64,000 nucleotides of DNA from sequence record KU686213.1, one strand, 5' to 3'. The translations under genes were made by a program, and so were the position numbers. Every line of letters begins with the position of its first letter. Position 1 is the first letter of the stretch. The notes under the pieces were generated by a model, which was not told where the DNA came from, ran no database searches, and saw only the letters and a list, made by a program, of their open reading frames with translations. Below are positions 30,202 to 55,460 of this stretch, piece by piece.

Positions 30202-30283
30202 ACCACTTACCAAAGTGTCCACTAACCCACCCGGTGCTGCCGTGGTGGGTTATACTAGTTGTATCAACAGAGCAGAGAGCTAC

Positions 30284-41057: not shown

Positions 41058-41702
41058 ATGAATAAGATATTTGCATTATTGGCTGCTGTCGTAGCAGCTA
41101 CACCCGCACAAGCTGGGTTCATTATCCCTGATGATATTGTTCCACTAAGTGGAGAAAGAGCCAGTAGAATGTTCTGGCGTGGATGTATTGATGAGAAAGG
41201 TGAGATTACTAAGATAACTGTTAAGTGTGATAGAATCTTTAAGCCTAAACCAACCCAAGCAAGGGTAGAATGGAAGAACGCAAAGAAGTGTGAGGAATAT
41301 ACTCCTGGTTGTGTATCTGTTGATGCTAGTATTCAAGTTGGGGGCTTTCAGCTTTCAGTTTTATCAGCTAGAACTAGAAGACGCCGTGGTCCTGGTGGTG
41401 GTTGGGAGTCATATTCTCAACTAGATATGGCTCCATCTAAGAAAGGTTTTGAGCAATATTCTATCAACTGTACTGATCCTGATAGTGATATTAGAGTGCT
41501 AGATTTTGATGGTAAACCTAAGCATATGTATAGAACAACACAGTTTAGACTTGATCTATGTAATAGTGTATTCCCTGAGCTTGAGCGTGATACAGCATAC
41601 CAGTTGAAAGAGTTAGCTTGTAGGCTTACGAAGGACCCAAAAAAGAATAGAGAGTGTTGGATAGACTTTAAGGAGTGGAAAGCAAACAGGAGGTACAGAT
41701 AG
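41058..41702 (+). CDS. Hypothetical exported Cys-rich protein
   Basis: Signal peptide MNKIFALLAAVVAATPAQA. Confidence 0.65.
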   Translation: MNKIFALLAAVVAATPAQAGFIIPDDIVPLSGERASRMFWRGCIDEKGEITKITVKCDRIFKPKPTQARVEWKNAKKCEEYTPGCVSVDASIQVGGFQLSVLSARTRRRRGPGGGWESYSQLDMAPSKKGFEQYSINCTDPDSDIRVLDFDGKPKHMYRTTQFRLDLCNSVFPELERDTAYQLKELACRLTKDPKKNRECWIDFKEWKANRRYR

Positions 41703-41780
41703 ACCACCTTGAGTAGTGTCCACTGCCCCATCACAGGGGCTTTTTTATGCTCTATAATAATCACATACACACAGAAACAG

Positions 41781-42392
41781 ATGAAACTCAACCACAAATT
41801 CAATAAGCGAGCCAAAGTTGAGGATCGTATCATTCTATCTAAGTCTGGCACACTATCAAAGTTTACCAAAAACCTCCAGACTATTGCGGGTTATCAGAAT
41901 CCTGATAGATATGACCCAGATAAGTATAAAGGTGATGCCTTTGAGTGGTTTGCTGAATACTTCTTTAAAGTATTCTCATGCGACAAAATGTTCTTATATA
42001 TTACTGATTATGAACCCAACCAGGGGTCTGATTATGGTGTTGATGGTTTGGGTAAATATGTTCTTGATACTCTCAAGCAGGTAGCGTTGCAGGTCAAGTT
42101 TAAGTCAAATCAATCTTCAACATTATCTGCAAAAAATGACAGCCTCTCTAATTTTGGAGTACACGCATATACTAAGCATGGTATTGAAATTAAGAGTGAG
42201 TATATAGTCATATTTACCAATTGTAGTGGTATTGAGCAATCAACTTATAAAATTTATTGTGATCAAATTCGTTGTATTGATAAAGAAATTATTTCTAGGT
42301 ATGTGGATAATAATGAATCATTCTGGGGGGGTTTAGAGGAGTATGTCACTCCAAAGACTGTCACATCACAGTCCACATCACCCACCACCTGA
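41781..42392 (+). CDS. Mrr-like (D..QxK) restriction endonuclease domain protein
   Basis: GDAFEWFAEYFF...DYGVDGLG...ALQVKFKS. Confidence 0.7.
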   Translation: MKLNHKFNKRAKVEDRIILSKSGTLSKFTKNLQTIAGYQNPDRYDPDKYKGDAFEWFAEYFFKVFSCDKMFLYITDYEPNQGSDYGVDGLGKYVLDTLKQVALQVKFKSNQSSTLSAKNDSLSNFGVHAYTKHGIEIKSEYIVIFTNCSGIEQSTYKIYCDQIRCIDKEIISRYVDNNESFWGGLEEYVTPKTVTSQSTSPTT

Positions 42393-42421
42393 TCTATACT
42401 ACATACATCAACGAACCACCA

Positions 42422-43576
42422 ATGGATTTTCAATTTTCTCTAGACCTATGCCGACATATTCGTGATAAATGGAATAGTGCAAAAAATAAAAAGGTAGATA
42501 AACTACATCTGCCCATATCAGAAGACCTTGCTATTGATCTCTGTTCGGGCTATAATAATAATACTAAATTTGCATTATTTGATGCGGGTTGTATCCTTGC
42601 AATTACCCTCATTGGCATGGGACATGAGCCATCAAATATTTATGTGGTGGAGAGTCCCGAGTTTGACTATCATTATAGTATTGCAAAAGATCTGTCAACT
42701 AAACTTGGATTTAGTATCATTGAATATCCCCTCCTCCAAAAACCAGATTTTAATATGAACTTTACCGCAACTCTCGGCAATCCCCCCTATAGTGGACAAC
42801 TTCATCTTGAGTTTCTTCTGAAGTGTCTTGAGATATCTGATGAGGTTAAACTAATTCATCCATCTGGTTGGCTGACACGTAGTGATCGTTCAATTGAGAA
42901 AGATGTGAAGAATGCTCTAGATGGTAGAGTAAAGTCACTGAAGATATTCAATGGTGTTCCAGTATTCAATGCCGAGTTTCAAGCTCCTTTAGTTATTACA
43001 GAGGCGGTGAAGAGTTGGGATGGTCCAGTAACAGTAACATATGATAATACAGGTAATACCTATGAAATTGATTCTATCTGGGACTTCCCTACTGGTTATT
43101 GGGAACCAACTGAGATCAACCTCACTCTCAGAGATTTAATTTTTAGTGAAGCAAAGAAGTCTAACCTACTTTCACTAAGAACTTCTAATATCAATTCAGT
43201 TCCACTTAATCTCCCCACGATTTGTGGTCATCCCGTAGTAAACGACAGTAAAAAGTTATTTGGTGATGACTTTCACACGTTCTTCTATCATAATAGTAAC
43301 ATCTATACTCACGAGAACAATGAAGGTAGATTTTACTCACTCAAGAGTGAAGAAGAGAGGGATAATCTAGTTTCATATCTCAAGACTAAGTTTGCTAGAT
43401 TTGCTCTTGCCCTGAATAAAGCAACTAATAGAAATAACGTTATTAGGTATATTGAGAATGTACCACTACCGCCACTTGATGTTGAGTGGACTGATGAGAG
43501 TGTATATGAATATTATGGTCTAAGTTCGGAACAGATTGATTCGATTGAATCGTTTATTCCAACATACTATAAGTGA
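42422..43576 (+). CDS. Eco57I/TaqI-like adenine methyltransferase, NPPY + target recognition part
   Basis: TLGNPPY, LIHPSGWL, C-terminal YLKTKFARF...VP...WTDE.VY.YYGLS; motif I degenerate (FDAGCILA). Confidence 0.8.
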   Translation: MDFQFSLDLCRHIRDKWNSAKNKKVDKLHLPISEDLAIDLCSGYNNNTKFALFDAGCILAITLIGMGHEPSNIYVVESPEFDYHYSIAKDLSTKLGFSIIEYPLLQKPDFNMNFTATLGNPPYSGQLHLEFLLKCLEISDEVKLIHPSGWLTRSDRSIEKDVKNALDGRVKSLKIFNGVPVFNAEFQAPLVITEAVKSWDGPVTVTYDNTGNTYEIDSIWDFPTGYWEPTEINLTLRDLIFSEAKKSNLLSLRTSNINSVPLNLPTICGHPVVNDSKKLFGDDFHTFFYHNSNIYTHENNEGRFYSLKSEEERDNLVSYLKTKFARFALALNKATNRNNVIRYIENVPLPPLDVEWTDESVYEYYGLSSEQIDSIESFIPTYYK

Positions 43577-43668
43577 TCCAATAATTAACCAATTAAAATA
43601 GTGTCACACTACACCAAAACGGGGTAGTGTGGTTTGCTATACTATATTCATACAAACGACCCCCCACA

Positions 43669-45114
43669 ATGAAAGCATATCCACACCAGTCCCGCACCCT
43701 TACTGCTATGGATGAGAATGATCGTGGTCTCATTGTCATTCCCACTGGTGGCGGTAAGACATTTGTGATGGCAGAAAATCTCCGTCAGAACCTTTCAGGT
43801 GTGTCTGTAGTGGTTGCTCCTAGGATCCTTTTGGCACAACAGTTATTCGGTGAGATTGACTCCATCATCGGTAATAGTGCTACCTTCCAGCACATGTTTG
43901 CATATAGTGGAGAAGCAATTGAGCGTGAGATGGATGAGTTGAGTCCAGAACAGATTCTTGATGTTAACTATGCTAATTGTAGTTCAGATAATGTTAAAAG
44001 TGAATATGTAAGATCTCTATCCAATAATTTACCCCTAATTATCTTTACAACATACCATTCACTTAATAATGTTGTTGGGGCTAATATTCCTATCGACAGA
44101 GCATATCTAGATGAGGCACACAATGCAACATCTATTCAGTTCAGTAATTCGGTTAAAGAGCTCAGTGATGTTGTTACGAAAATGTATTCTTTTACTGCAA
44201 CACCCAAGTTAGGTGAATCTACTACAGGCAGAGGAAACAATGTAGTAAAGACATTTGGTGAGAAAATTATCGAAGTTCCTGCTAAGGAGTTGGTTGAGAA
44301 TGGTATTATTGTTCCCCCTATGCCAGTCACTGTGTATACTGGTTTGTGTAGAGAAAAACTTGATGAGACTATGCTCTCCCGCGATAGTATTATTCGCGCA
44401 TACTCCCATTGCAAAGATAATCATCCAGGTATCAATCATAAGATTCTAGTTGCTGCTGATGGTACTAAGACTATCAATGATATGAGAACATCCACTAATT
44501 TAATCAAAAGTCTTAATGCTGACGGATGTGATGTATTCATGGTAACTTCAGCTCATGGTAGTTGGATGAATAATACTGAAATTAAGAGTAGAAGTGAGTT
44601 CTTAAATCTTCTCCGCGAATATGGATCCAATCCCACTAAGAAGATTGTTGTTATTCACCATTCTATTCTATCTGAAGGTATTGATGTGCCAGGTATGACT
44701 GGTGTTCTTGTCCTTAGAAATATGAATGTTAGTGTCTTAAGGCAGACTATTGGTAGGGTATTGCGTATGCTTAAGACTGACCGCAATGCTATTGCTAATG
44801 GTGACATTGATGCTGGCGATTACATGAACTACCATAAATCATATGGTCTGGTTATGGTTCCTGTTCACAAGGATGATGGTTCTGATTTGGATTCTACTGT
44901 TGGTATAGTATATAATTCAATTATGGGTATGGGCTTCACCCCTGAAGATGTGATAAATGAGGAGAATGTGCGGGGTGAGCATAAACTAGAACTGCCAGAT
45001 GATCTAAAGAAGTCTATTCAGCAGAAGATTAAAGAAGTGGACAATAACTGGAAATGGATGTATAATACGACTATCATAGAGAGAGACTTTTCCTCTCTTT
45101 TACATCTGCTATGA
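43669..45114 (+). CDS. SF2 DEAH helicase (type III Res/ISP-like), copy 2
   Basis: IPTGGGKT, DEAH, FTATPK, LSEGIDV, QTIGRVLR. Confidence 0.9.
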   Translation: MKAYPHQSRTLTAMDENDRGLIVIPTGGGKTFVMAENLRQNLSGVSVVVAPRILLAQQLFGEIDSIIGNSATFQHMFAYSGEAIEREMDELSPEQILDVNYANCSSDNVKSEYVRSLSNNLPLIIFTTYHSLNNVVGANIPIDRAYLDEAHNATSIQFSNSVKELSDVVTKMYSFTATPKLGESTTGRGNNVVKTFGEKIIEVPAKELVENGIIVPPMPVTVYTGLCREKLDETMLSRDSIIRAYSHCKDNHPGINHKILVAADGTKTINDMRTSTNLIKSLNADGCDVFMVTSAHGSWMNNTEIKSRSEFLNLLREYGSNPTKKIVVIHHSILSEGIDVPGMTGVLVLRNMNVSVLRQTIGRVLRMLKTDRNAIANGDIDAGDYMNYHKSYGLVMVPVHKDDGSDLDSTVGIVYNSIMGMGFTPEDVINEENVRGEHKLELPDDLKKSIQQKIKEVDNNWKWMYNTTIIERDFSSLLHLL

Positions 45115-45120
45115 GAAAGT

Positions 45121-45522
45121 ATGTCTAAGAATACGCATAATGAAAACGTAGGGTCTAATATTATACGTTCTAATGAGCGCATTGATCAGACTGGTGAGGT
45201 ATTCACTCCAATGGAACTATGCCGTGAGATGGTCAACGAACTACCACTAGATGTACTACAGAATCCTAAGAGCACCTTTTTAGATAATTCTGCTGGTCAC
45301 GGTAACTTTATCATCGCTCTCCGCGATAAGCTACTAGAATATCACGAGTTATCACATATCTTAGACAATATGCTCTATGCTGTTGAGTTTATGGAGGATA
45401 ATCACGCCGAGTTGTGTGAGAGAATAGGTGTGCCTGTTACTCACCCACATTATGTTAGAGCTGATGCTACCACATATGATTATAGCTTTGGTGAGCCTAT
45501 AGGATTAGAGGCATTCTTCTAG
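45121..45522 (+). CDS. Methyltransferase SAM-binding module (motif X-I-II, no NPPY), copy 1
   Basis: GEVFTP, FLDNSAGHGNF, LYAVE; no catalytic motif. Confidence 0.8.
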   Translation: MSKNTHNENVGSNIIRSNERIDQTGEVFTPMELCREMVNELPLDVLQNPKSTFLDNSAGHGNFIIALRDKLLEYHELSHILDNMLYAVEFMEDNHAELCERIGVPVTHPHYVRADATTYDYSFGEPIGLEAFF

Positions 45523-45597
45523 CCACTTTGAGTAGTGTCCACTGCCCCAACACAGGGGCATTTTTAATGTTATGATTTATCCATCAGCTTAACGCAT

Positions 45598-45915
45598 ATG
45601 ATCGAAGCTATCGCAGCTCCAAACACACAGGTCACTGAAGAGGGTGGACTCTTCTACATCTCTATGAGCGTTGGTGCTGATGAGGTATGCACTGCTTGTT
45701 ATATGCGCGACAAGGCGCAGAGAGTGGTCATTATCCAATTAGATACACCAGTGGAGTATAGAGGCAATGGCTACGCCACAGCCCTCCTGGAGGGCATACA
45801 GAGGCGTGAGAAGACTGGTCCTATCCGTGTGATTAGTACTAGCCATGCCGTTGGTTTCTACAATAAGCTAGGATACATTGAAGTATCACCATACGTGTTC
45901 CAAAGCTCAAACTGA
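45598..45915 (+). CDS. GNAT family acetyltransferase
   Basis: YRGNGYATALL and AVGFYNKLGY. Confidence 0.8.
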   Translation: MIEAIAAPNTQVTEEGGLFYISMSVGADEVCTACYMRDKAQRVVIIQLDTPVEYRGNGYATALLEGIQRREKTGPIRVISTSHAVGFYNKLGYIEVSPYVFQSSN

Positions 45916-45976
45916 CCACTGAACCCCCACAGGGCACCTAAATGCCCTATACTATTCACATAAGCAACGGACACCA

Positions 45977-46870
45977 ATGACCAAGAACCTACACCTTGAG
46001 CACCCAGAAGACCTTATCTTGTCTGGTGACCTATCAGTGCTTGACTGGTTCTCTACTATCTCCACCACCAGTGTGAAGATGGACGGCAGTGTAGCCATTG
46101 TATGGGGCATCAACCCAGAGAATGGTAAGTTTTTCGTAGGTAAGAAATCAGTATTCAATAAGAAGAAGGTTGAGATATGCTATACACCACAAGATATTAG
46201 GAAGTTCTACGGTGACCGTGAGGAACTAGCAGACATTCTCCTCACTTGCCTTGACTTCTTGCCCCGCACTGGTGGTATCTATCAAGGTGACTTCATTGGG
46301 CTGGGTGGTAACTCAAAATACACACCCAACACCATTACATATGACTTTGGCTCTCCTGTTGAGGAAGTCATTATCATTGCTCCTCACACATACTATGTTG
46401 GTGATACTATCAAGGGATGTGTTGCTCACCCACTATCACACCAATTAGAATCAACTGGTGATGTTCTGTTTGTTCAGCCTACCGTTGATTGTAAGTGTAC
46501 CTTCTATGATTCTGTTGATGCTATCCGCACATCAGTGAAGAAGTCCAAGTTCTTGACGGATAAATCAGCCAAAGAGGTTCGTGTTATACTTAACGCATTC
46601 GTTCGCGAAGGTAAGTCCATCAGCCCACAACTACTAGAACAAGTTGTAGGTGACTGGAATCTCACTATGTCCTACTTCCAAATCATTGACCTAAAGGAGC
46701 AAATGATGGAAGCTATGATAGTATATGATGGACCAAAGGCATTTATTGGTGATATGCCCGTAGCTTGTGAAGGCTATGTTCGCACCAATCGCCACGGTTC
46801 TATGAAACTGGTTGACCGCTACCAGTTCGCACAGGCTAACTTCAACAACACACGATTCAGGTCAAACTAA
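45977..46870 (+). CDS. ATP-dependent ligase-like nucleotidyltransferase
   Basis: KMDG (motif I), QGDF, EGYV (IV), KLVDR (V). Confidence 0.65.
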   Translation: MTKNLHLEHPEDLILSGDLSVLDWFSTISTTSVKMDGSVAIVWGINPENGKFFVGKKSVFNKKKVEICYTPQDIRKFYGDREELADILLTCLDFLPRTGGIYQGDFIGLGGNSKYTPNTITYDFGSPVEEVIIIAPHTYYVGDTIKGCVAHPLSHQLESTGDVLFVQPTVDCKCTFYDSVDAIRTSVKKSKFLTDKSAKEVRVILNAFVREGKSISPQLLEQVVGDWNLTMSYFQIIDLKEQMMEAMIVYDGPKAFIGDMPVACEGYVRTNRHGSMKLVDRYQFAQANFNNTRFRSN

Positions 46871-47097
46871 TGGATTGCACTAGATGTCTACACTACTATG
46901 AAATACGTGGGAGAAAGATATGCCGCTCTCCCCATCTTGATGAGGAAGCACCTGTTGAACAGGAGAGATCTAGTTTAGGTCAATGCAATCAAGATGGAAA
47001 GAACTTTGAATTTTGTGTTTATAGAAAGGCACGTCACGTGTTTTTGGGCTCAATATATGATGAAAATGCAACTAGACTAGACCACTATCCAAACTGA
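46870..47097 (+). CDS. Small Cys-rich protein
   Basis: CxxC...C...C..C pattern; coupled. Confidence 0.5.
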   Translation: MDCTRCLHYYEIRGRKICRSPHLDEEAPVEQERSSLGQCNQDGKNFEFCVYRKARHVFLGSIYDENATRLDHYPN

Positions 47098-47162
47098 CCA
47101 CTAACGTTCCACAGGGCACACAGATGCCTTATACTACATACATAGCAAACGAGGCTTACTAA

Positions 47163-47492
47163 ATGCTTATCAACTGGACAGATGAAGAGAGAGCAGCCGC
47201 TACCCGTGGTGATGTAAACATCTTCATCCTCAACACCACTCCACAAGCTATCAAGGAGATGGACAAAGAACTACCCACTGATACACATATCATTGAGTAC
47301 GTTATTGATGGTGAGACATCCTATGATGCTGTTAGAGGCTATAAGATGAGCGATATCTTCAATGTATACCACGATAAGTTTAGAAGAGACGACATCACTG
47401 CTCAAGTCATTAGTATCAAGAGTGGCTATGGTGTTATCAAACCCAAGCTTTATGGCTATCAAGCCGTTGAATCATCCAAGAAAACCAAGTAA
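47163..47492 (+). CDS. Hypothetical protein
   Basis: Follows cassette at 47094; YGVIKPKLYGY motif. Confidence 0.7.
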   Translation: MLINWTDEERAAATRGDVNIFILNTTPQAIKEMDKELPTDTHIIEYVIDGETSYDAVRGYKMSDIFNVYHDKFRRDDITAQVISIKSGYGVIKPKLYGYQAVESSKKTK

Positions 47493-47498
47493 TTCATT

Positions 47499-47876
47499 AT
47501 GACTAACACAACACCCGATCCAATAGACAATCTTCCTTATCAACCCGTTGCTCGTGATAGAAATGCTGAACAGCAACGCTTCCAGGAGCGCGTCCTAGTG
47601 CGCTCCACAGCCACTGGTTTCGAGCAGGGCATTGCTGCTATGGCTGGGCTGTTTACGGCTGGTCCTCTGGGCTCTCTGGCTGCCTGGGGGGCTCTCCGTG
47701 GTCTCCAAGGTAAGTGGGCACCCTGGTTCATCCTAGGCATCCCTGCTTCTGTTGCTCTCAACGTAGTTCAGTTGCTTATTATTGCTGCTATCTTTGGGGC
47801 AGTTGAGCCAGAAGCTGGAACAGACTATGAAGCACACCACATACAGGAGCAGCAAGAGCAAGTAACGAACATTTAA
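47499..47876 (+). CDS. Hypothetical membrane protein
   Basis: Gly-rich hydrophobic segments. Confidence 0.65.
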   Translation: MTNTTPDPIDNLPYQPVARDRNAEQQRFQERVLVRSTATGFEQGIAAMAGLFTAGPLGSLAAWGALRGLQGKWAPWFILGIPASVALNVVQLLIIAAIFGAVEPEAGTDYEAHHIQEQQEQVTNI

Positions 47877-47912
47877 GTTTGTCTTGATTGGAGCACAAAA
47901 GTCTGTTATAAT

Positions 47913-48107
47913 ATGTGTGTAAATACTAACAGAGTAATTCATATAATAATGAGACACAATAACACAGACGCACTGATAAATGATTGCGAAGACTACCTAC
48001 TACACAGATATATTCCAATACATTCATATACAGGAGATGAAATCATAAAGCAAGCCATTAAGGAAGGTTATATGATGGACCTATTTTATAGACACTACTC
48101 AAAGTGA
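47913..48107 (+). CDS. Hypothetical protein
   Basis: ORF before terminator; start uncertain. Confidence 0.45.
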   Translation: MCVNTNRVIHIIMRHNNTDALINDCEDYLLHRYIPIHSYTGDEIIKQAIKEGYMMDLFYRHYSK

Positions 48108-48111
48108 CTAC

Positions 48112-48135
48112 GGGGGGCAATATGCCCTCTTTTTT
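48112..48135 (+). terminator. Intrinsic terminator
   Basis: GGGGGCA-ATA-TGCCCTC + T run. Confidence 0.65.
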
Positions 48136-48145
48136 ATGATATAAT

Positions 48146-48934
48146 ATGGAAACCAATTCAGAAACTATGAACAAGCTACTCAATGGTGAATGTCTTGAAG
48201 TTATGAAGACACTAGCTGATAATTCAATTGATATGGTTTTCTGTGACCTACCTTATGGTACTACACAGAACTCTTGGGATACTATCATCCCATTCGATGA
48301 GTTGTGGGCAGAGTATCATCGTATCGTCAAGATTGATGGTGCTATTGTACTAACAGCACAACCACCATTTGATAAGGTCTTAGCTTGTTCAAATCTAAAA
48401 GACTTCCGTTATGAATGGATATGGGAGAAGAATAAAGCAACTGGGCACCTAAATGCTAAGAAGATGCCTATGAAGGCACACGAGAACATACTAGTATTTT
48501 ATAGAAAGCTTCCTACATATAACCCACAGATGACCACAGGTCATAAGCCAATGAATGCAGTATTGCCTAAGAGCAATATGCCTGCACCAAAGGAGAAGAG
48601 AAACTATAACCACGTAGAAGAGCGACTAGGTAATCCTGGTGGTGGAACTAGTAGGTATCCAAGAGATACTGTTAGGTTCCCCGTTATCAACAATGATGAC
48701 CCAAAGAAGTTCCACCCAACACAGAAACCTATCCCCTTGATTGAGTACTTCATCAAGACATATTCTAATCCAGGTGATGTTGTACTAGACAATTGTATGG
48801 GCTCAGGTTCTACCTGTATTGCTGCATCTAATCTAGATCGACAGTTTGTTGGTATTGAGATGAGTGAGGAATATTACAACCTAGCAGTTGAGTGGGTCGA
48901 ATCCGAACGTAGACTCACCCAGTTCTTTAACTGA
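48146..48934 (+). CDS. Beta-class N4-C/N6-A DNA methyltransferase (orphan)
   Basis: CDLPYG (IV), HPTQKP, VLDNCMGSGST (I). Confidence 0.93.
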   Translation: METNSETMNKLLNGECLEVMKTLADNSIDMVFCDLPYGTTQNSWDTIIPFDELWAEYHRIVKIDGAIVLTAQPPFDKVLACSNLKDFRYEWIWEKNKATGHLNAKKMPMKAHENILVFYRKLPTYNPQMTTGHKPMNAVLPKSNMPAPKEKRNYNHVEERLGNPGGGTSRYPRDTVRFPVINNDDPKKFHPTQKPIPLIEYFIKTYSNPGDVVLDNCMGSGSTCIAASNLDRQFVGIEMSEEYYNLAVEWVESERRLTQFFN

Positions 48935-48995
48935 CCACTGAACCACCACAGGGCACCCAAATGCCCTATACTATATTCATCAACCAAAGGGAACA

Positions 48996-49163
48996 ATGAT
49001 CAAGTCACAAGTTCAGCGCATCGTTCGCGAAGTAGCTACTACTCAAGGTGCTACGCTCACACGTGATGAGAAGTGGTCCGTGTTCCTTAACGTCTGTGAT
49101 GGTCTCTATCGTGACGGGCGCATCACACTCAAGCAACACGACAACTGGACATCCCCTTTCTGA
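48996..49163 (+). CDS. Small early protein (55 aa)
   Basis: Follows cassette at 48931; DGRIT..Q.DNWT.PF. Confidence 0.6.
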   Translation: MIKSQVQRIVREVATTQGATLTRDEKWSVFLNVCDGLYRDGRITLKQHDNWTSPF

Positions 49164-49171
49164 GTATAACA

Positions 49172-49318
49172 ATGATCACCCAAGACGACCGCGATTTCGT
49201 AAACTTTCTGTTCGGTAAGTTGCTTACTGAGACAGATACTGATATGATTGATCTACACGATGACGATACTGCTGGTATCGACGCACTTGAATTTGAACAA
49301 CTCACCCTCGCTATTTGA
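49172..49318 (+). CDS. Acidic microprotein (48 aa)
   Basis: MITQDDRDFVNFLF...DLHDDD. Confidence 0.55.
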   Translation: MITQDDRDFVNFLFGKLLTETDTDMIDLHDDDTAGIDALEFEQLTLAI

Positions 49319-49320
49319 TT

Positions 49321-49668
49321 ATGAGCATCCTTACACAAGAGTCTACACAAAAACTTGCTGAGGCTATTGCACAAGATGTATTCGCATACATCTCCGAAGA
49401 TGGTCGCTACCTTGACGGTGTGATGAACACCATTGAGCCTGCTATTGTACACGTTATTGGTCAAACAAGCCCCGAGCTAGTTGGTGAGCTTGGTTGCGCT
49501 ATTATGGGTATGATTTGTATCCCTAGTGACCCAGATGTATACCAAGATGACCTATGGAAGACACGATATGAGCGACTCTATCGCTATGTGAAGCACACAT
49601 ATGCTGAGAGTTACATTGATGGTGCTGAGTATGGTATAATTGCTAGTGATGAAGTTTACGGATACTGA
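49321..49668 (+). CDS. Hypothetical protein
   Basis: ORF in gene run. Confidence 0.6.
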   Translation: MSILTQESTQKLAEAIAQDVFAYISEDGRYLDGVMNTIEPAIVHVIGQTSPELVGELGCAIMGMICIPSDPDVYQDDLWKTRYERLYRYVKHTYAESYIDGAEYGIIASDEVYGY

Positions 49669-49670
49669 TT

Positions 49671-49877
49671 ATGCCTGCACATAGTAATATGGGTCAATAT
49701 AGACTCACTGATATTCAGGTAGATCTTATTCTCCATTGTTTGGAGTATACAAGAAACCTTACTATTGAGGAAGACAATGAGAGGAGGAAGATTGTAGAAT
49801 CACTACAGTCTGGAGTATTACCACCACCACCTCATACCATAGAAGAAGACCCCTACGCCAACTATTGCGACATCTAA
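49671..49877 (+). CDS. Hypothetical protein
   Basis: ORF in gene run. Confidence 0.5.
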   Translation: MPAHSNMGQYRLTDIQVDLILHCLEYTRNLTIEEDNERRKIVESLQSGVLPPPPHTIEEDPYANYCDI

Positions 49878-50260
49878 TGCCTAAAACAAAGCAACCCAAA
49901 CTAACACAAGAAGAGCTATTCCCTCACGGTAGGGAGTTTGGCTATCGCCTACAACTTGAAGAGCGTATTGAAGGTCTAGGAACTATTGCTTGGTTTCAGT
50001 GTGAGTTCCACTTGACTAAACACGTAGAAAGATATAGAATAACCAAAGGTAAAATTGATGTGATGAAAGGGGCAACCCCCCTCACCAAAGACCCATTTAC
50101 CCCTAAACGTACTAGGAAGGCTAGTGGTACCAAGGCATCTCAAGCATCAAAAACCAAAAAACCTGTAAAAACAGCAGCCAAGACCAAGAGTACCCCTCGC
50201 ACATCTAAAACTGCTAAAAAAGAGGTTTTTAGTAATCTAGACACATTCTTTTCTAAATGA
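49877..50260 (+). CDS. Hypothetical protein with Lys/Thr-rich tail
   Basis: WFQCE.HL.K...RY motif; ends LDTFFSK. Confidence 0.65.
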   Translation: MPKTKQPKLTQEELFPHGREFGYRLQLEERIEGLGTIAWFQCEFHLTKHVERYRITKGKIDVMKGATPLTKDPFTPKRTRKASGTKASQASKTKKPVKTAAKTKSTPRTSKTAKKEVFSNLDTFFSK

Positions 50261-50402
50261 ATAACCCATTGAGTGCTATAAAGCACACTAGAACAACATA
50301 TAGTAGGCAATATCAGAAAAACTATGTTGAGGTATTAGTCCAATTTAAGGATGAGCCTGAAGCATGGATACCCCTTGAAACTTTACTAGCACTTAAAGAA
50401 CA

Positions 50403-50630
50403 ATGATTGAACTATTCAGTACAGTAAATTTTACTCCATTAGAAGCTTCTAAAGCAGCACTTTTAGCGTTGCTGATTGGTGGCATAGTCTACTACGCCAT
50501 ATTTTTTTTGCTTCAAAAATGGATTTCTTTATCTGTTAGACTTGAAAGTCCTTGGTCAGAAATTGTATTTTATGTTCCGCTTATTTTTGGAGCATGGCTC
50601 GCTGTTTTCTCCGCTTTAATTTCCAAATGA
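50403..50630 (+). CDS. Small two-TM membrane protein
   Basis: Two hydrophobic segments. Confidence 0.55.
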   Translation: MIELFSTVNFTPLEASKAALLALLIGGIVYYAIFFLLQKWISLSVRLESPWSEIVFYVPLIFGAWLAVFSALISK

Positions 50631-50863
50631 TTGAACTATCTCTTATCACACTACTCAATACAATGGCTCCACGCTATTGTGAATACAAGCGTAGTGGCTT
50701 AAATGATACAAAAGCAACTCTACTATCATACAGTGAGATGCATGACGAATACCCATCAGCTGCTATTAGAAAGGCAGTGCTTAATGGTAGGGGATTAGAA
50801 GCAATTGCTGTCGCTATGGTAGCAACAACTTGTCCACTTGATGCAATAAAAGACAATGACTAA
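50627..50863 (+). CDS. Hypothetical protein
   Basis: MIELSLITLL...; coupled. Confidence 0.55.
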   Translation: MIELSLITLLNTMAPRYCEYKRSGLNDTKATLLSYSEMHDEYPSAAIRKAVLNGRGLEAIAVAMVATTCPLDAIKDND

Positions 50864-51135
50864 ACCACTCAAAACATATCACGTTAAGGTAAAGTTCCTT
50901 GATGACCTAAAGTATGGTGAGTTTATCACAGCACCATCAGAAAAAGAAGCCCTCAAACTATTTGTAGAGGAGTATTTGTATGTTGCATCGGAGAGGGAAG
51001 AATGAACAATAAACTATATGAACAGCACGATGATGAGAGTATTGAAGCACTCAATACTATCGACACATTGAAGCGTAGGATTATTGAATTAGAAGCAGAG
51101 ATTGTAACACTTAAAGCACGAATGAGGGATATGGG

Positions 51136-51330
51136 ATGAGTTTTTCACCAGCACTAGGTATATTAGTTGAGTATAAGGGAAGCGTAGGTGAGATTAAGTT
51201 CATTGATGACGTATATCTCACCATATGCACAAAGAGTAAGACTGATGGGATGATAGGTGACCTATGTTTGGTTGTCTACAAGCCAGAATGGGACCTAATC
51301 AAGATGATTGGTGATCGTAATAGACAGTAA
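51136..51330 (+). CDS. Hypothetical protein
   Basis: Small beta-rich ORF. Confidence 0.6.
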   Translation: MSFSPALGILVEYKGSVGEIKFIDDVYLTICTKSKTDGMIGDLCLVVYKPEWDLIKMIGDRNRQ

Positions 51331-51335
51331 GTAAA

Positions 51336-52040
51336 GTGTCCACTGCCCTCAGTGGTATTCTTCCTATTCTCTTGAGACAAGAATTTCCAGATGCTGAAAT
51401 TTGCTGCCTTGAGTATAATAATATGTTTGTAAAACATCTAGAAACTCTTGGCTTTATCACTTATACATCTAAAGACACACTTCCTATGAATTTTGACTTA
51501 ACTATAGGCAACCCACCATATGGGAATAGAGCTTCATTAGCAATTAAGTTTGTTAATAAGGGGTTAGAGTTATCTGGTCGTGTTGATATGGTACTACCCC
51601 TATCATTTAATAAACCATCAATACAAAACTCAATTGACCCATATTCTGAATGTATATTCAGCGAAGAACTACCTGCCGATACATTCCCCAATGGAATTAG
51701 GGCAGTCCGCCAAATATGGGTAAAGTCAAAGACTAAGAGGGAGCTAGTTCCCCTACCAACTACACACTCAGACTTTGAGTTTATTAAATGGGAAGATAGA
51801 GACACTGCCGACCTAATGATTGGGGCAGTAGGCTCTGGTCCTTCTGGTAGAGTCTACACAGAGAACTTCAGTCATTATCAATGCAAGCATAGTTTCATTA
51901 AATGTAAGTCTCAGGAGATTATTGATAGGTTGGTTGAGATGGGACCTGAACTGAGAGAAACTTCTAAAGCTCAAAATGGTAGAGGTGGTGTATGTAAGTC
52001 TGATATTGTTACACTGTACATTAGTAAGTATGATTCATGA
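51336..52040 (+). CDS. Adenine methyltransferase NPPY + target recognition part (start uncertain)
   Basis: MNFDLTIGNPPYG, LAIKFVNK, VLPLSF, QIW; no intact motif I. Confidence 0.75.
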   Translation: MSTALSGILPILLRQEFPDAEICCLEYNNMFVKHLETLGFITYTSKDTLPMNFDLTIGNPPYGNRASLAIKFVNKGLELSGRVDMVLPLSFNKPSIQNSIDPYSECIFSEELPADTFPNGIRAVRQIWVKSKTKRELVPLPTTHSDFEFIKWEDRDTADLMIGAVGSGPSGRVYTENFSHYQCKHSFIKCKSQEIIDRLVEMGPELRETSKAQNGRGGVCKSDIVTLYISKYDS

Positions 52041-52438
52041 GTAAGAACAGGCACAACCTGGATGTTGGTTCATCCATTGATAGAAGCGATGAGCGTATTG
52101 CAGAGACACAAGAGGTATTCACTCCCATTTCTCTATGTGCATCTATGGTCAATGATATTGATGAAGATACACTCAAGAATCCATCCAGTAAGTTTCTAGA
52201 CAACTCTGCTGGTTCTGGCAACTTCTTGGTTGCCCTCCGCGATGAGCTATTGGAATATCACGAGTTATCACATATCTTAGATAATATGCTATATGCGGTT
52301 GAGCTTATGGAAGACAATCACGCCGAGTTATGTGAGAGGTTAGGTGTTCCTGTCACCCATCCACACTATGTCTGCCACAATGCACTCACATATGATTATA
52401 GCTTCGGTGAGCTTGTAGGATTAGAGGCATTCTTCTAG
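52037..52438 (+). CDS. Methyltransferase SAM-binding module (motif X-I-II, no NPPY), copy 2
   Basis: EVFTP, FLDNSAGSGNF; 100/133 identical to 45121-45522 by manual alignment. Confidence 0.8.
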   Translation: MSKNRHNLDVGSSIDRSDERIAETQEVFTPISLCASMVNDIDEDTLKNPSSKFLDNSAGSGNFLVALRDELLEYHELSHILDNMLYAVELMEDNHAELCERLGVPVTHPHYVCHNALTYDYSFGELVGLEAFF

Positions 52439-52520
52439 CCACTTTCAATAGTGTCCACTAATACACCACAGCCCACCTAGGTGGGTTATACTATATTCAA
52501 CAAGCAAAGCAAACTAGCCA

Positions 52521-53606: not shown

Positions 53607-53691
53607 GAGCATACAGTGCCCACTCATAGACTATAATTACAGGAGTAGACACACCCCCACCTCAATCAAACAAACTACACACAAATAACAA

Positions 53692-53850
53692 ATGAAAACA
53701 TCACACACTGTATTAATTTCAGCTACAGCAGCATCTTCATTCGTCATTGGTAAGAACTATGCACCTCGAACAACTTGGGACATTTTTATTGTTTTGTTGC
53801 TAACTGCTATTATGAGTCTTATGATTCAATTTGTGAGGGAAAATAGTTGA
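53692..53850 (+). CDS. Two-TM microprotein paralogue A (52 aa)
   Basis: MKTSHTVLISATAASSFVIGKNYAPRTTWDIFIVLLLTAIMSLMIQFVRENS. Confidence 0.6.
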   Translation: MKTSHTVLISATAASSFVIGKNYAPRTTWDIFIVLLLTAIMSLMIQFVRENS

Positions 53851-53905
53851 GGTATATTCTAATTCCACCCCCACCTCAATCAAACAAACTACACACAAAT
53901 AACAA

Positions 53906-54064
53906 ATGAAAAACTTACACATTGCAGCAATTTCAGCGGTATTATCATTTACATTTATTATTGGATTAACATATGTACCTGAAACAACTGGTTATTTTAT
54001 TGCTGGTTCTGTATTAACTGCTGTTATTAGTCTTGTTATTGGTTCTATGAGGGAAAATAGTTGA
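53906..54064 (+). CDS. Two-TM microprotein paralogue B (52 aa)
   Basis: MKNLHIAAISAVLSFTFIIGLTYVPETTGYFIAGSVLTAVISLVIGSMRENS. Confidence 0.6.
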   Translation: MKNLHIAAISAVLSFTFIIGLTYVPETTGYFIAGSVLTAVISLVIGSMRENS

Positions 54065-54154
54065 GGTATATTCTAATTCCACCCATTGCAGCGCCTATTC
54101 ACCTGTCGCGCCACTAATTGTACTTGCAGTAATCTTTACTTTGGATAATAAACT

Positions 54155-54331
54155 ATGAAAACATCACATACTGTATTAATTTCAGCTACAGCAGCATCTT
54201 CATTCGTCATTGGTATGAACTACGCACCTATAATATCTTATAATATTTTTGCTGTTTTAGCACTAACTGCTGTATTTACTCTTATTGTTAAAGGAATCCA
54301 ATTCATTATTAAAAACCCAAATGAAATCTAA
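54155..54331 (+). CDS. Two-TM microprotein paralogue C (58 aa)
   Basis: MKTSHTVLISATAASSFVIGMNYAPIISYNIFAVLALTAVFTLIVKGIQFIIKNPNEI. Confidence 0.6.
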   Translation: MKTSHTVLISATAASSFVIGMNYAPIISYNIFAVLALTAVFTLIVKGIQFIIKNPNEI

Positions 54332-54488
54332 CTATCTACCATATATTGTTGTAGGGCTCACTATTGTTGTTGGTGTTAATCTATGGGTAATTGAGAGAGA
54401 TGCCGAATCATTTGAACGTTGGTGTTCTAGTGAATCAGCACAGACACAAAGTCTAGCTTGTTACCCACAGTTAAACCCAATGCCCTAA
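54321..54488 (+). CDS. Small membrane protein
   Basis: MKSNYLPYIVVGLTIVVGVNLW. Confidence 0.55.
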   Translation: MKSNYLPYIVVGLTIVVGVNLWVIERDAESFERWCSSESAQTQSLACYPQLNPMP

Positions 54489-55183
54489 TCAACATCAGCA
54501 TAGAACCACATATAACCTTTCCAACGTTGATTCCATTTGATAGAAGTACAAATGCCTTTACCTCTATCATCTTCACCCATAGCTCTCATTGCTTCACTGA
54601 TAGAGTCGAAGATAGGAGTAACGTGACCTTCTTTGTGTATGCCGTATACCTTACGTTTGTTACTACCAATTTGTTTATATACCCACCATTTGTATCCATA
54701 GGCAGTACCATCTCTAGCAATAGCATCTTTAATTTTAGTTATCTTACCATTAGCAAACTCAGCAGCAGCTTTCCATCCGTGATGAGTCTTAAGCTTGCCC
54801 GTTTTAGTACAACGTGATTTAATGGTATTACAAGGGTGTTTAGGTGATGGTTTCTTCTTTCTCTGTATGCCCCATTTACGCTTACTAGTAGTATGCCGTT
54901 CCCTTGTAATGTTATGCTCTAATACGTCTTGATTATACTCTGGTTTATATCTATCGAACCAGTATTCCATACGGTTAGCAATGTCACACTTATAATACTC
55001 TTCAAGTATAGATATCTTAAAATTAGAGGGATTGTAACGTCTCATAGACATAAATAGGGAGCTATTCTCAGACTCATATTTTTGTAACATTTCACGCCAC
55101 TCTCGATTGAGTGGTTTTTCCGTGTAATCAATGTACGAATGCCCTGTTTCAAGGTTTTTGATGACGTAGATGTTATAGAGCAT
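54485..55183 (-). CDS. GIY-YIG-like homing endonuclease, possibly degenerate
   Basis: NIYVIKNLETGHSYIDYT N-terminus; NUMOD-like C-terminal repeats (IFDSISEAMR, G.KW). Confidence 0.6.
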   Translation of the reverse strand: MLYNIYVIKNLETGHSYIDYTEKPLNREWREMLQKYESENSSLFMSMRRYNPSNFKISILEEYYKCDIANRMEYWFDRYKPEYNQDVLEHNITRERHTTSKRKWGIQRKKKPSPKHPCNTIKSRCTKTGKLKTHHGWKAAAEFANGKITKIKDAIARDGTAYGYKWWVYKQIGSNKRKVYGIHKEGHVTPIFDSISEAMRAMGEDDRGKGICTSIKWNQRWKGYMWFYADVD

Positions 55184-55278: not shown

Positions 55279-55380
55279 AGTAACGTTCACGATGAATGTA
55301 GAAGATAAACCCAACCAACCTAAACGATTGATTGAGTTGTTAATATAATCACTTGTAAGCACATAGGAACCATCTATACC

Positions 55381-55460
55381 CATAGAGTACATAGAGCCTA
55401 TTAGCTCCATAGAGTCCATAGAGCCTATTAGCTCCATAGAGCCTATTAGCTCCATAAAGG
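55381..55460. repeat. Tandem repeat of CATAGAGCCTATTAGCTC
   Basis: Three exact 18-mers (55390, 55417, 55435) interspersed with 9-mer CATAGAGT(A/C) units. Confidence 0.9.

Follow-up and report, generated by a model that had tools for sequence, protein, structure and literature searches.

Synechococcus phage S-CAM7 is a T4-like cyanomyovirus of the Kyanoviridae, and the stretch of its genome considered here, nt 1-64000 of KU686213.1 (isolate 0910SB42; hereafter the window), carries at two sites a gene for a 133-aa protein with the motifs of the S-adenosylmethionine (SAM)-binding half of an adenine methylase. These small proteins (genes 057 and 076) and their family are given the working name S133; in KU686213.1 the genes of both sites are all annotated as “hypothetical protein,” a helicase gene excepted. 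Motifs X, I, II and III are taken as the SAM-binding half of a methylase, (N/D)PP(Y/F) as motif IV and TRD as the DNA-recognition domain, and the proteins that carry motif IV near S133 are called NPPY proteins. The account to which we give slightly better than an even chance is that S133 is a functional half-methylase, which would form one active site together with a partner and is carried in modules that are swapped between phages. For the second site by itself (genes 075 and 076), where the split-enzyme reading of 51336-52438 is well supported, this account is probable; at the first site (genes 054-057), where the same reading of 42422-45522 is doubtful, fold complementation has less than an even chance.

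Genes 057 (45121-45522; subfamily A, phrog_4376, E 7e-77) and 076 (52037-52438; subfamily B), which lie on the plus strand like all the features given below unless otherwise stated, encode proteins identical at 100 of 133 positions in a gap-free alignment (BLASTP, E 1e-76). Both carry E-V-F-T-P (motif X) and F-L-D-N-S-A-G-x-G-N-F (motif I), their beta2 ends in V-E-x-M-E-D-N (motif II) and a stretch A-L/T-T-Y-D-Y represents motif III; motif IV, (N/D)PP(Y/F), was looked for in both and is absent. Nucleotide identity between the paralogues is 0.54 at the 5′ end of the gene and climbs to 0.88 at its 3′ end, and the 28-nt string GGATTAGAGGCATTCTTCTAGCCACTTT occurs in exactly two copies, at 45502 and 52418, each across the stop codon of a small gene and each leading into a repeated intergenic stem-loop cassette. 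On all these points (the degree of identity, the motifs present and the catalytic one missing, the shared DNA end) a preliminary description of this DNA, made from the letters alone, has been borne out. The profile phrog_4376 covers S133 end to end (E about 1e-76), S133 also matches the first third of N6_Mtase-type profiles, and its sole sequence match in the PDB is CamA, at motif I. The search for relatives covered 1.84 billion representative proteins and gave 585 of them; the S133 reading frame is intact at 130-140 aa in relatives down to 29% identity, and in an alignment of 25 relatives P30, G59 and G61 are invariant, with R20, E26, F28, T29, D93, N94 and F123 nearly so. In bacterial and archaeal genomes, searched with gene 057 as the single query, no relative was found.

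Among its relatives S133 occurs in four forms: as free-standing proteins of 120-180 aa, with their own Met and a common end point; as the N-terminus of ordinary gamma-order methylases, such as P0023; as the C-terminus of proteins starting M-x-F-x-x-x-x-G-N-P-P-Y; and as an internal segment of helicase-methylase fusions of 1251-1337 aa. P0023 (386 aa) is 49% identical to S133 and continues directly, in the normal order, into F-D-V-I-V-G-N-P-P-F, and in P0104, likewise of normal order, residues 12-103 align with S133 and residues 107-360 with a cyanophage partner. In the permuted single chains (P0024, P0075, P0086, P0132 and ORF084c of Aeromonas phage Aeh1) the NPPY part comes at the start and the S133 segment last. 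From these forms the end of the S133 gene can be placed, by comparison of sequences, in the loop between motifs III and IV (beta3-beta4), and since the single-chain relatives join both parts at the loop where the split genes divide, S133 and a partner starting at beta4 may be read as one enzyme; the fused relatives are the main argument for this reading. The permuted fusions look rare, because a homology search with P0024 gave mostly normal-order enzymes, matched over the S133 quarter only. The alignments behind the structure models are shallow, and the AlphaFold2 (AF2) model of P0024, built on 24 rows, is confident over residues 1-100 (beta4, NPPY, beta5-beta7) and 270-378 (helix X, beta1-beta3), poor over the TRD, and has a predicted template modelling score (pTM) of 0.58 despite 169 disordered residues; its Foldseek neighbours are CamA, M.TaqI and PglX, with only about 115-140 columns aligned. 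Helicase and methylase are found in one chain in P0080 and P0085. In P0134, a metagenomic protein of 444 aa, two tandem S133-like segments precede NPPY, that is, the N-terminal half is duplicated within one chain.

In the whole window the string G-N-P-P-Y is present in only two open reading frames (ORFs), 42422-43576 (gene 055, first site) and 51336-52040 (gene 075, second site), with M-N-F six to eight residues ahead of it in both. Similarity between the two ORFs is confined to 69 residues around NPPY (39% identity), so the earlier statement that their C-terminal regions differ is correct. The core of gene 075 (51486-52040) runs from beta4 and NPPY through the TRD, matches phrog_5172 (E 4e-75) and has neither motif X nor motif I. 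The start codons of the NPPY partner genes are uncertain: that of 075, whose frame is open from 51336, is probably either 51423, the GenBank start, or 51486, the start indicated by orthologues. Its cyanophage orthologues (P-SSM2 gp036, which is 45% identical and starts M-K-F-T-L-A-I-G-N-P-P-Y, and several metagenomic loci) begin exactly at M-K-F-x-h-h-I-G-N-P-P-Y, at the Met equivalent to 51486, and are without the stretch 51336-51485; in rV5-like coliphages the phrog_5172 relatives have a canonical motif I and are complete methylases of compact size. The S-CAM7 gene has 50 extra upstream codons (cassette fragment, 51336-51485), with a stem-loop at 51340-51355 followed by a motif II/III-like remnant of the lost N-terminal half in which motifs X and I are absent. 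The open frame itself begins in a truncated cassette copy (51336-51355), its first 20 nt being those of the cassette stem-loop, and this segment looks like the scar left when an ancestral complete gene lost motifs X and I. Of the distinct N-terminally extended partners (L002-L089), 37 of 37 have a Met 6-10 residues ahead of G-N-P-P-Y, vs 17 of 52 normal-order relatives; in the window this Met is at 42755 and 51486, and it may be an internal start for a beta-4-start product or the relic of one.

The ATG of gene 076 overlaps the stop codon of 075 (ATGA). Motifs IV and I are on separate chains with IV encoded first; 075 and 076, as well as the pairs formed by the beta-4-start orthologues, are adjacent genes with complementary, non-overlapping parts of one catalytic domain. 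A further cassette (52439-52514; stem-loop plus TATACTAT, repeat family D3) follows downstream.

In the mechanism that we propose, S133 would be the free-standing N-terminal half of a gamma-type N6-adenine methylase, comprising helix X, beta1-beta3 and the SAM-binding loop, and 075 would supply the rest: beta4 and its NPPY catalytic loop, then beta5-beta7 and the TRD, in which the specificity of the enzyme would reside. The two proteins would be made from one message, with translation coupled via the ATGA overlap, and would come together by fragment complementation, with the beta3-beta4 loop as the point of division and with strand beta1 of S133 paired to beta4 of its partner; judging from sequence, the assembled pair would bind SAM and methylate DNA. 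The genomic order of the pair is the permuted one (IV-VIII, TRD, X, I-III); some Aeromonas phages and metagenomic relatives have this order in one fused chain. At the first site, S133 may either stand in for a SAM site that is dead or serve as an accessory subunit. Furthermore, at both sites the S133 gene and the upstream regulatory cassette would serve as homology arms for the exchange of whole upstream modules between phages. A bolder version seems to us rather unlikely: S133 as a portable, near-universal SAM half that activates non-homologous NPPY/TRD subunits in trans, with specificity and helicase/nuclease changed by a single recombination in which S133 is the homology arm, and with all the permutation intermediates preserved.

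Gene linkage was followed in 80 IMG/VR viral contigs with close S133 genes and six isolate genomes. Wherever a locus extends upstream of S133, the preceding gene directly adjoins or overlaps it and usually encodes an NPPY protein; S133 forms the 3′ member of the module, a further helicase gene lying downstream in some loci; nine or more partners start exactly at beta4. The NPPY proteins of the modules belong to at least five families; a superfamily 2 (SF2) helicase, of which there are three families, and a 187-aa nuclease-like protein may each be present or absent; in some contigs helicase and NPPY protein are fused (1039 aa), with S133 still next. The order is nuclease-like, NPPY, helicase, S133 at the first site of S-CAM7, helicase, NPPY, nuclease-like, S133 in Bellamy-like contigs, and S133, nuclease-like, NPPY, helicase in ACG-2014f; a metagenomic phage contig with 42% S133 identity has a split helicase, a methylase with intact motif I and S133, with an ATGA overlap. 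The layout is shared by T4-like Klebsiella phages, whose NPPY protein is fused to a GIY-YIG domain. In one of them, KpV477 (L006, 993-2926), this domain is N-terminal on the NPPY protein and a separate 110-aa TRD-tail ORF stands before the S133-like gene, an arrangement that appears by its sequence to be a three-piece version of the Aeromonas single-chain enzyme.

The ratio of non-synonymous to synonymous substitution rates (dN/dS) is 0.17 between 057 and 076, with dS about 1.2, 0.04-0.13 among S133 orthologues and about 0.10 among orthologues of the beta-4-start partners, and both halves are therefore maintained as proteins. From what is established about the fold, a chain that begins at beta4 cannot by itself bind the cofactor in the manner of a class I methylase, so that its conservation speaks for a partner. 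That the genes are decaying fragments, an outcome which the preliminary description had named as fatal to its proposal, was rejected on the dN/dS values (0.04-0.17) and the breadth of conservation, the gene being present in more than 80 marine viral loci, and a recent duplication of S133 on the dS of about 1.2 and the placement of the copies in separate clades. The S133 tree has in fact two main clades (Shimodaira–Hasegawa-like approximate likelihood-ratio test, SH-aLRT, 92): clade A, which has 057, is found behind N55, N56b or N55c partners, which keep their N-terminal half, and clade B, which has 076, behind phrog_5172 partners, either with a beta-4 start or with a long degenerate half. Such co-variation of S133 and partner sequences fits functional coupling. 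Combinatorial specificity had also been proposed; the two clades are old and each goes with partner families of its own, which, together with the dS value, argues against free combinatorial pairing, and on these sequences free cross-pairing of both S133 proteins with either partner in one phage is unlikely. The idea of a conserved, putatively SAM-binding subunit with variable partners is supported, the partners differing even between near-identical isolates and the small gene remaining constant.

At the first site, gene 057 closes a set of four genes. Gene 054 (41781-42392; phrog_7683, E 3.8e-102) is a candidate Mrr-like PD-(D/E)xK nuclease on the motif, an E..D-x-G-x-D-G..Q-x-K pattern invariant in 11 orthologues, and has no match in Pfam, NCBIfam, PADLOC or PDB sequences; gene 055 (42422-43576) encodes the 384-aa NPPY protein and gene 056 (43669-45114) an SF2 helicase (Pfam ResIII 5e-12, DEAD 1e-11, Helicase_C 2e-5). 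The helicase and nuclease-like genes, which the preliminary description had passed over, make the site look like a restriction-modification-type module, and their products may have a restriction-like activity. The NCBIfam and PADLOC scans gave weak, partial matches only; the helicase, S133 and one partner protein match PADLOC Type IIG models at the expected positions, 056 matching the helicase part of these enzyme models. PDB sequence searches with 075, 055, the helicase, the nuclease-family profile and P0085 returned nothing useful. The four-gene module is bracketed by direct repeats, 41704-41747 and 45523-45566, which are 93% identical stem-loops with T-runs, the right one containing a terminator-like hit at 45543-45560. 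TATACTA/TATAAT boxes stand 22-25 nt ahead of the ATG of 054, 055 and 056, and none is present at 057, 075 and 076. The GenBank start of S420910_055 is a CTG at 42323; a TATACTA box lies 24 nt before the ATG at 42422, and its position suggests that the shorter, 384-aa product is the real one.

Gene 055 has the gamma motif order with a degenerate, glycine-poor motif I, in which F-D-A-G-C takes the place of the G-x-G loop. It had been stated that neither NPPY ORF has an intact motif I, and this is so for both, with the qualification that 055 keeps the rest of the N-terminal half-domain. In its AF2 model the predicted local distance difference test (pLDDT) is 80-94 over beta1-beta7, with an own helix X, beta1 (50-53), beta2 (73-77), beta3 (98-101) and beta4 (114-119); Foldseek aligns the model to M.TaqI and CamA with E 1e-8 over 260-340 columns, and TrmM is among the other fold hits. 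On phrog_11371, 055 matches positions 2-248 and S133 positions 282-362. In a profile comparison S133 and the N-terminus of the 055 family are in register, with a weak score (E 0.002, probability 14%), and the homology of the resident half of 055 to S133 is supported mainly by the fold model.

Several observations weigh against S133 and the NPPY proteins being two halves of one enzyme, in large part at this first site. The helicase gene 056 sits between 055 and 057, the latter starting 6 nt past the helicase stop. On its model 055 appears as a complete seven-stranded gamma fold on its own; as it has its own beta1-beta3, S133 could take a place next to its beta4 only if the resident half were displaced, and 055 and 057 are not complementary halves. 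In the 055 family the acidic residues of motifs I and II are kept in the resident half, the glycine loop being absent, and on this conservation the resident halves of the partner families may still bind SAM. Moreover, the same small-gene subfamily elsewhere follows methylases with an intact motif I, F-Y-D-P-A-M-G-G-G-Q-Y in 0809CC03 and F-L-D-P-S-M-G-G-G-Q-F in L090, and therefore S133 is not simply the missing SAM site there. All the Pfam matches are below their gathering cut-offs, S133 scoring 17.2 and 14.8 bits with N6_Mtase (20.4), gene 075 18.0 bits and gene 055 15.6 bits with Eco57I (25.3). The two confident parts of the P0024 model would form one body as judged from its pTM, and the Foldseek alignments of this permuted model span one half only, as a permutation would lead one to expect. 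The pairing of the two chains, finally, is suggested by homology and linkage. The proposal of one split architecture present twice is accordingly not supported, given the intervening helicase and the modelled complete fold of 055. What remains of the heterodimeric methylase first envisaged is a selected half-methylase family linked to NPPY/TRD proteins without a canonical SAM loop and provided with single-chain relatives, and of the small gene lying downstream of an NPPY ORF, the direct overlap of 075 by 076; at the first site 057 is separated from 055 by the helicase gene.

These same data may be explained in other ways. S133 could be a SAM-binding subunit with an accessory or regulatory role in the helicase/nuclease/methylase modules (it might sense the cofactor or help in assembly, for instance) rather than a part of the catalytic fold, the real enzymes being the NPPY proteins that have their own N-terminal half; this we judge unlikely. 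It would account for S133 behind complete methylases with intact motif I and behind 055 with its complete predicted fold, for its almost constant linkage to SF2 helicases and for the S133 segment within the 1251-1337-aa helicase-methylase fusions. However, it leaves unexplained the beta-4-start partners, which are under purifying selection, and the fused permuted enzymes, whose only SAM-binding half is the S133 segment. We consider it less probable still that the proteins are methylase-like enzymes acting on a target other than DNA adenine (RNA, protein or another base), or that the NPPY proteins merely bind and flip bases for the helicase or nuclease. The best fold and sequence relatives are TRD-bearing DNA adenine methylases (TaqI, CamA, PglX, BseCI and Type I M subunits) and the gene context includes a ResIII helicase and a nuclease-like gene, even though all Pfam matches are sub-threshold, NPPY-type folds include RNA and protein methylases, TrmM being among the fold hits, and there is already a canonical beta-class enzyme for DNA methylation in the phage, at 48146-48934.

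The architecture of the second site brings to mind translational frameshifting: 075 and 076 overlap by 4 nt and fused permuted homologues exist, so a programmed frameshift at the ATGA could give one permuted chain. This is very improbable, for elsewhere the overlaps are of 1, 4, 8, 14, 17 or 20 nt in both relative frames, with small gaps in some loci, no slippery site is conserved, and S133 always has its own Met and a conserved N-terminus; as a general mechanism, frameshift fusion was rejected on the variable length and frame of the overlap. It would be equally surprising if S133 were a gene remnant kept as a DNA homology arm without protein function: the crossover zone inside its 5′ end and the 5′ to 3′ rise in paralogue identity agree with such a role, but the dN/dS of 0.04-0.17, the frame intact to 29% identity and the invariant SAM-motif residues do not. 

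Module exchange is seen directly in related isolates. In 0910CC49 and 0809CC03 the flanks are 97.8-99.5% identical to the window and unrelated helicase and NPPY genes replace 41776-45119. The first of them, 99.3-99.5% identical on both sides, has two unrelated genes there, one helicase-like (711 aa) and one for an NPPY protein (348 aa), the latter overlapping S133 by ATGA; 0809CC03 has a third version of the first site, with a split helicase and a methylase with intact motif I, and a different pair also at the second site. The left border of the swap is a 61-nt cassette (41715-41775; GC stem-loop and T-run at 41725-41740 with a terminator-like hit, then a TATAAT-like box), which is 100% identical in 0910CC49 with differing DNA to its left and right. 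At the other end of the swap, the border is a graded zone within S133, the first 220 nt of 057 holding 21 of the 38 mismatches found over 7.7 kb, and this distribution points to a crossover inside the 5′ end of 057. Directly left of the boundary cassette there is a second variable slot, in which gene 053 (a signal-peptide protein, 41084-41714) is replaced in 0910CC49 by an unrelated, secreted-looking protein of 145 aa.

The cassette consists of T-G-(A/T)-C-C-A-C-T, a GC stem-loop and T-A-T-A-C-T-A, with an ATG about 20 nt later, and at least 15 intergenic copies are present on the plus strand of the window, among them those at 30216, 32711, 36304, 39900, 41717, 45536, 45913, 47095, 48932, 52452, 57240, 57721, 57959 and 59120. 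Promoter-like by its sequence, it looks like the cyanophage version of the PeSL promoter/terminator unit; promoter/stem-loop units have been proposed to mediate shuffling in T4-type phages (PMC2839356, PMC4122927). As in the PeSL cassettes of these phages, a repeated stem-loop with a -10-like box is found at the borders of differing segments. However, the right crossover here is in the S133 coding sequence rather than in a second cassette, and the cyanophage motif T-G-W-C-C-A-C-T ... T-A-T-A-C-T-A is unlike the published enterobacterial and vibrio versions.

Known gamma-class N6-adenine methylases are single chains in the order X, I-VIII, TRD. The S-CAM7 proteins are like this class (M.TaqI, CamA, PglX/BrxX; N6_Mtase/Eco57I) in motifs X, I, II, III and IV, and it provides the best structural matches of 055 and of the permuted relative P0024; unlike the known enzymes, here the N-terminal half is a separate gene after the catalytic/TRD gene and the Pfam scores are sub-threshold. 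One methylase made from two polypeptides, as proposed for 075 and 076, has precedents among cytosine-5 enzymes: M.AquI is a naturally two-subunit one. In M.EcoHK31I, alpha and beta polypeptides must associate to form the C5 methylase (PMC2836561). However, in the latter the gene for the small chain, whose only motif is IX, lies within the large gene, and neither enzyme is split into a SAM half and a catalytic half or has a permuted gene order, unlike 075/076. Among heteromeric adenine methylases, METTL3-METTL14 and the ciliate MTA1c likewise have one subunit with a degenerate cofactor site, but each subunit is a complete MT-A70 fold, the active one having both the SAM site and the catalytic motif (PMC9174199), and they are not homologous to the S133/NPPY family.

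The order IV-VIII, TRD, X, I-III of 075 followed by 076 and of the fused relatives is that of the beta class, although by sequence and fold the S-CAM7 proteins are gamma-type and not Pfam N6_N4_Mtase. A duplication model of methylase permutation was reportedly put forward by Jeltsch in 1999 and Bujnicki in 2002. The intermediates that duplication and truncation predict are matched by complete enzymes, complete enzymes plus S133, a degenerate half plus S133, a beta-4 start plus S133 and fused permuted chains, a series of forms seen side by side, whose order of events is a proposed one. Circular permutation of amino-methylases of the beta class is itself well known (PMC7544214).

Regarding the first site, 055 and its neighbours look, on their sequences, like a restriction-modification enzyme of Type ISP or of the helicase-linked Type IIG kind that has been taken apart. 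Type ISP enzymes (LlaGI, LlaBIII) combine a Mrr-like nuclease, an SF2 helicase-like ATPase, a gamma N6-adenine methylase and a TRD. With the candidate nuclease counted in, the set of parts is the same here and in the helicase-containing Type IIG enzymes, but in this lytic phage they are four separate genes rather than one polypeptide, and no sequence match to the solved Type ISP structures was found.

The surroundings of the two sites include other genes. The beta-class N6/N4 DNA methylase at 48146-48934 is canonical and complete (Pfam N6_N4_Mtase, 1e-29) and lies between both split-type sites. Just past the first site, a small GNAT acetyltransferase gene (45598-45915) stands ahead of a gene for a DUF6267 protein (45977-46870; E 2.9e-76), whose K-x-D-G-like motif V-K-M-D-G-S suggests a nucleotidyl-transferase or ligase-like enzyme. 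Beyond the second site, 53652-54331 contains three tandem paralogous genes for hydrophobic proteins of 52-58 aa (214-nt repeat, 64-77% identity), followed at 54485-55183 by the only sizeable minus-strand gene of the area, which encodes 232 aa with a GIY-YIG homing endonuclease-like N-terminus and has no Pfam match, and at 55380-55451 by a short tandem array of a 27-nt unit within overlapping small minus-strand ORFs.

To our knowledge, natural two-chain DNA methylases are known only for a few cytosine-5 enzymes. In an incomplete literature search, with REBASE outside its coverage, no description was found of an adenine methylase split into a cofactor half and a catalytic half in permuted order, nor any paper on this cyanophage arrangement. 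Should the pair prove active, it would offer a natural case of fragment complementation in the methylase fold, a ready-made scaffold for split, targetable adenine methylases and a direct test of how the circular permutation of methylases arose. The same architecture is also found in T4-like phages of Klebsiella and Aeromonas, in which experiments are easily done. For the cyanophages themselves, the exchange described here marks a hot spot at which genomes otherwise 99.5% identical differ by whole methylase/helicase modules, and this points to strong diversifying selection, exerted by host restriction systems or by competition between phages.

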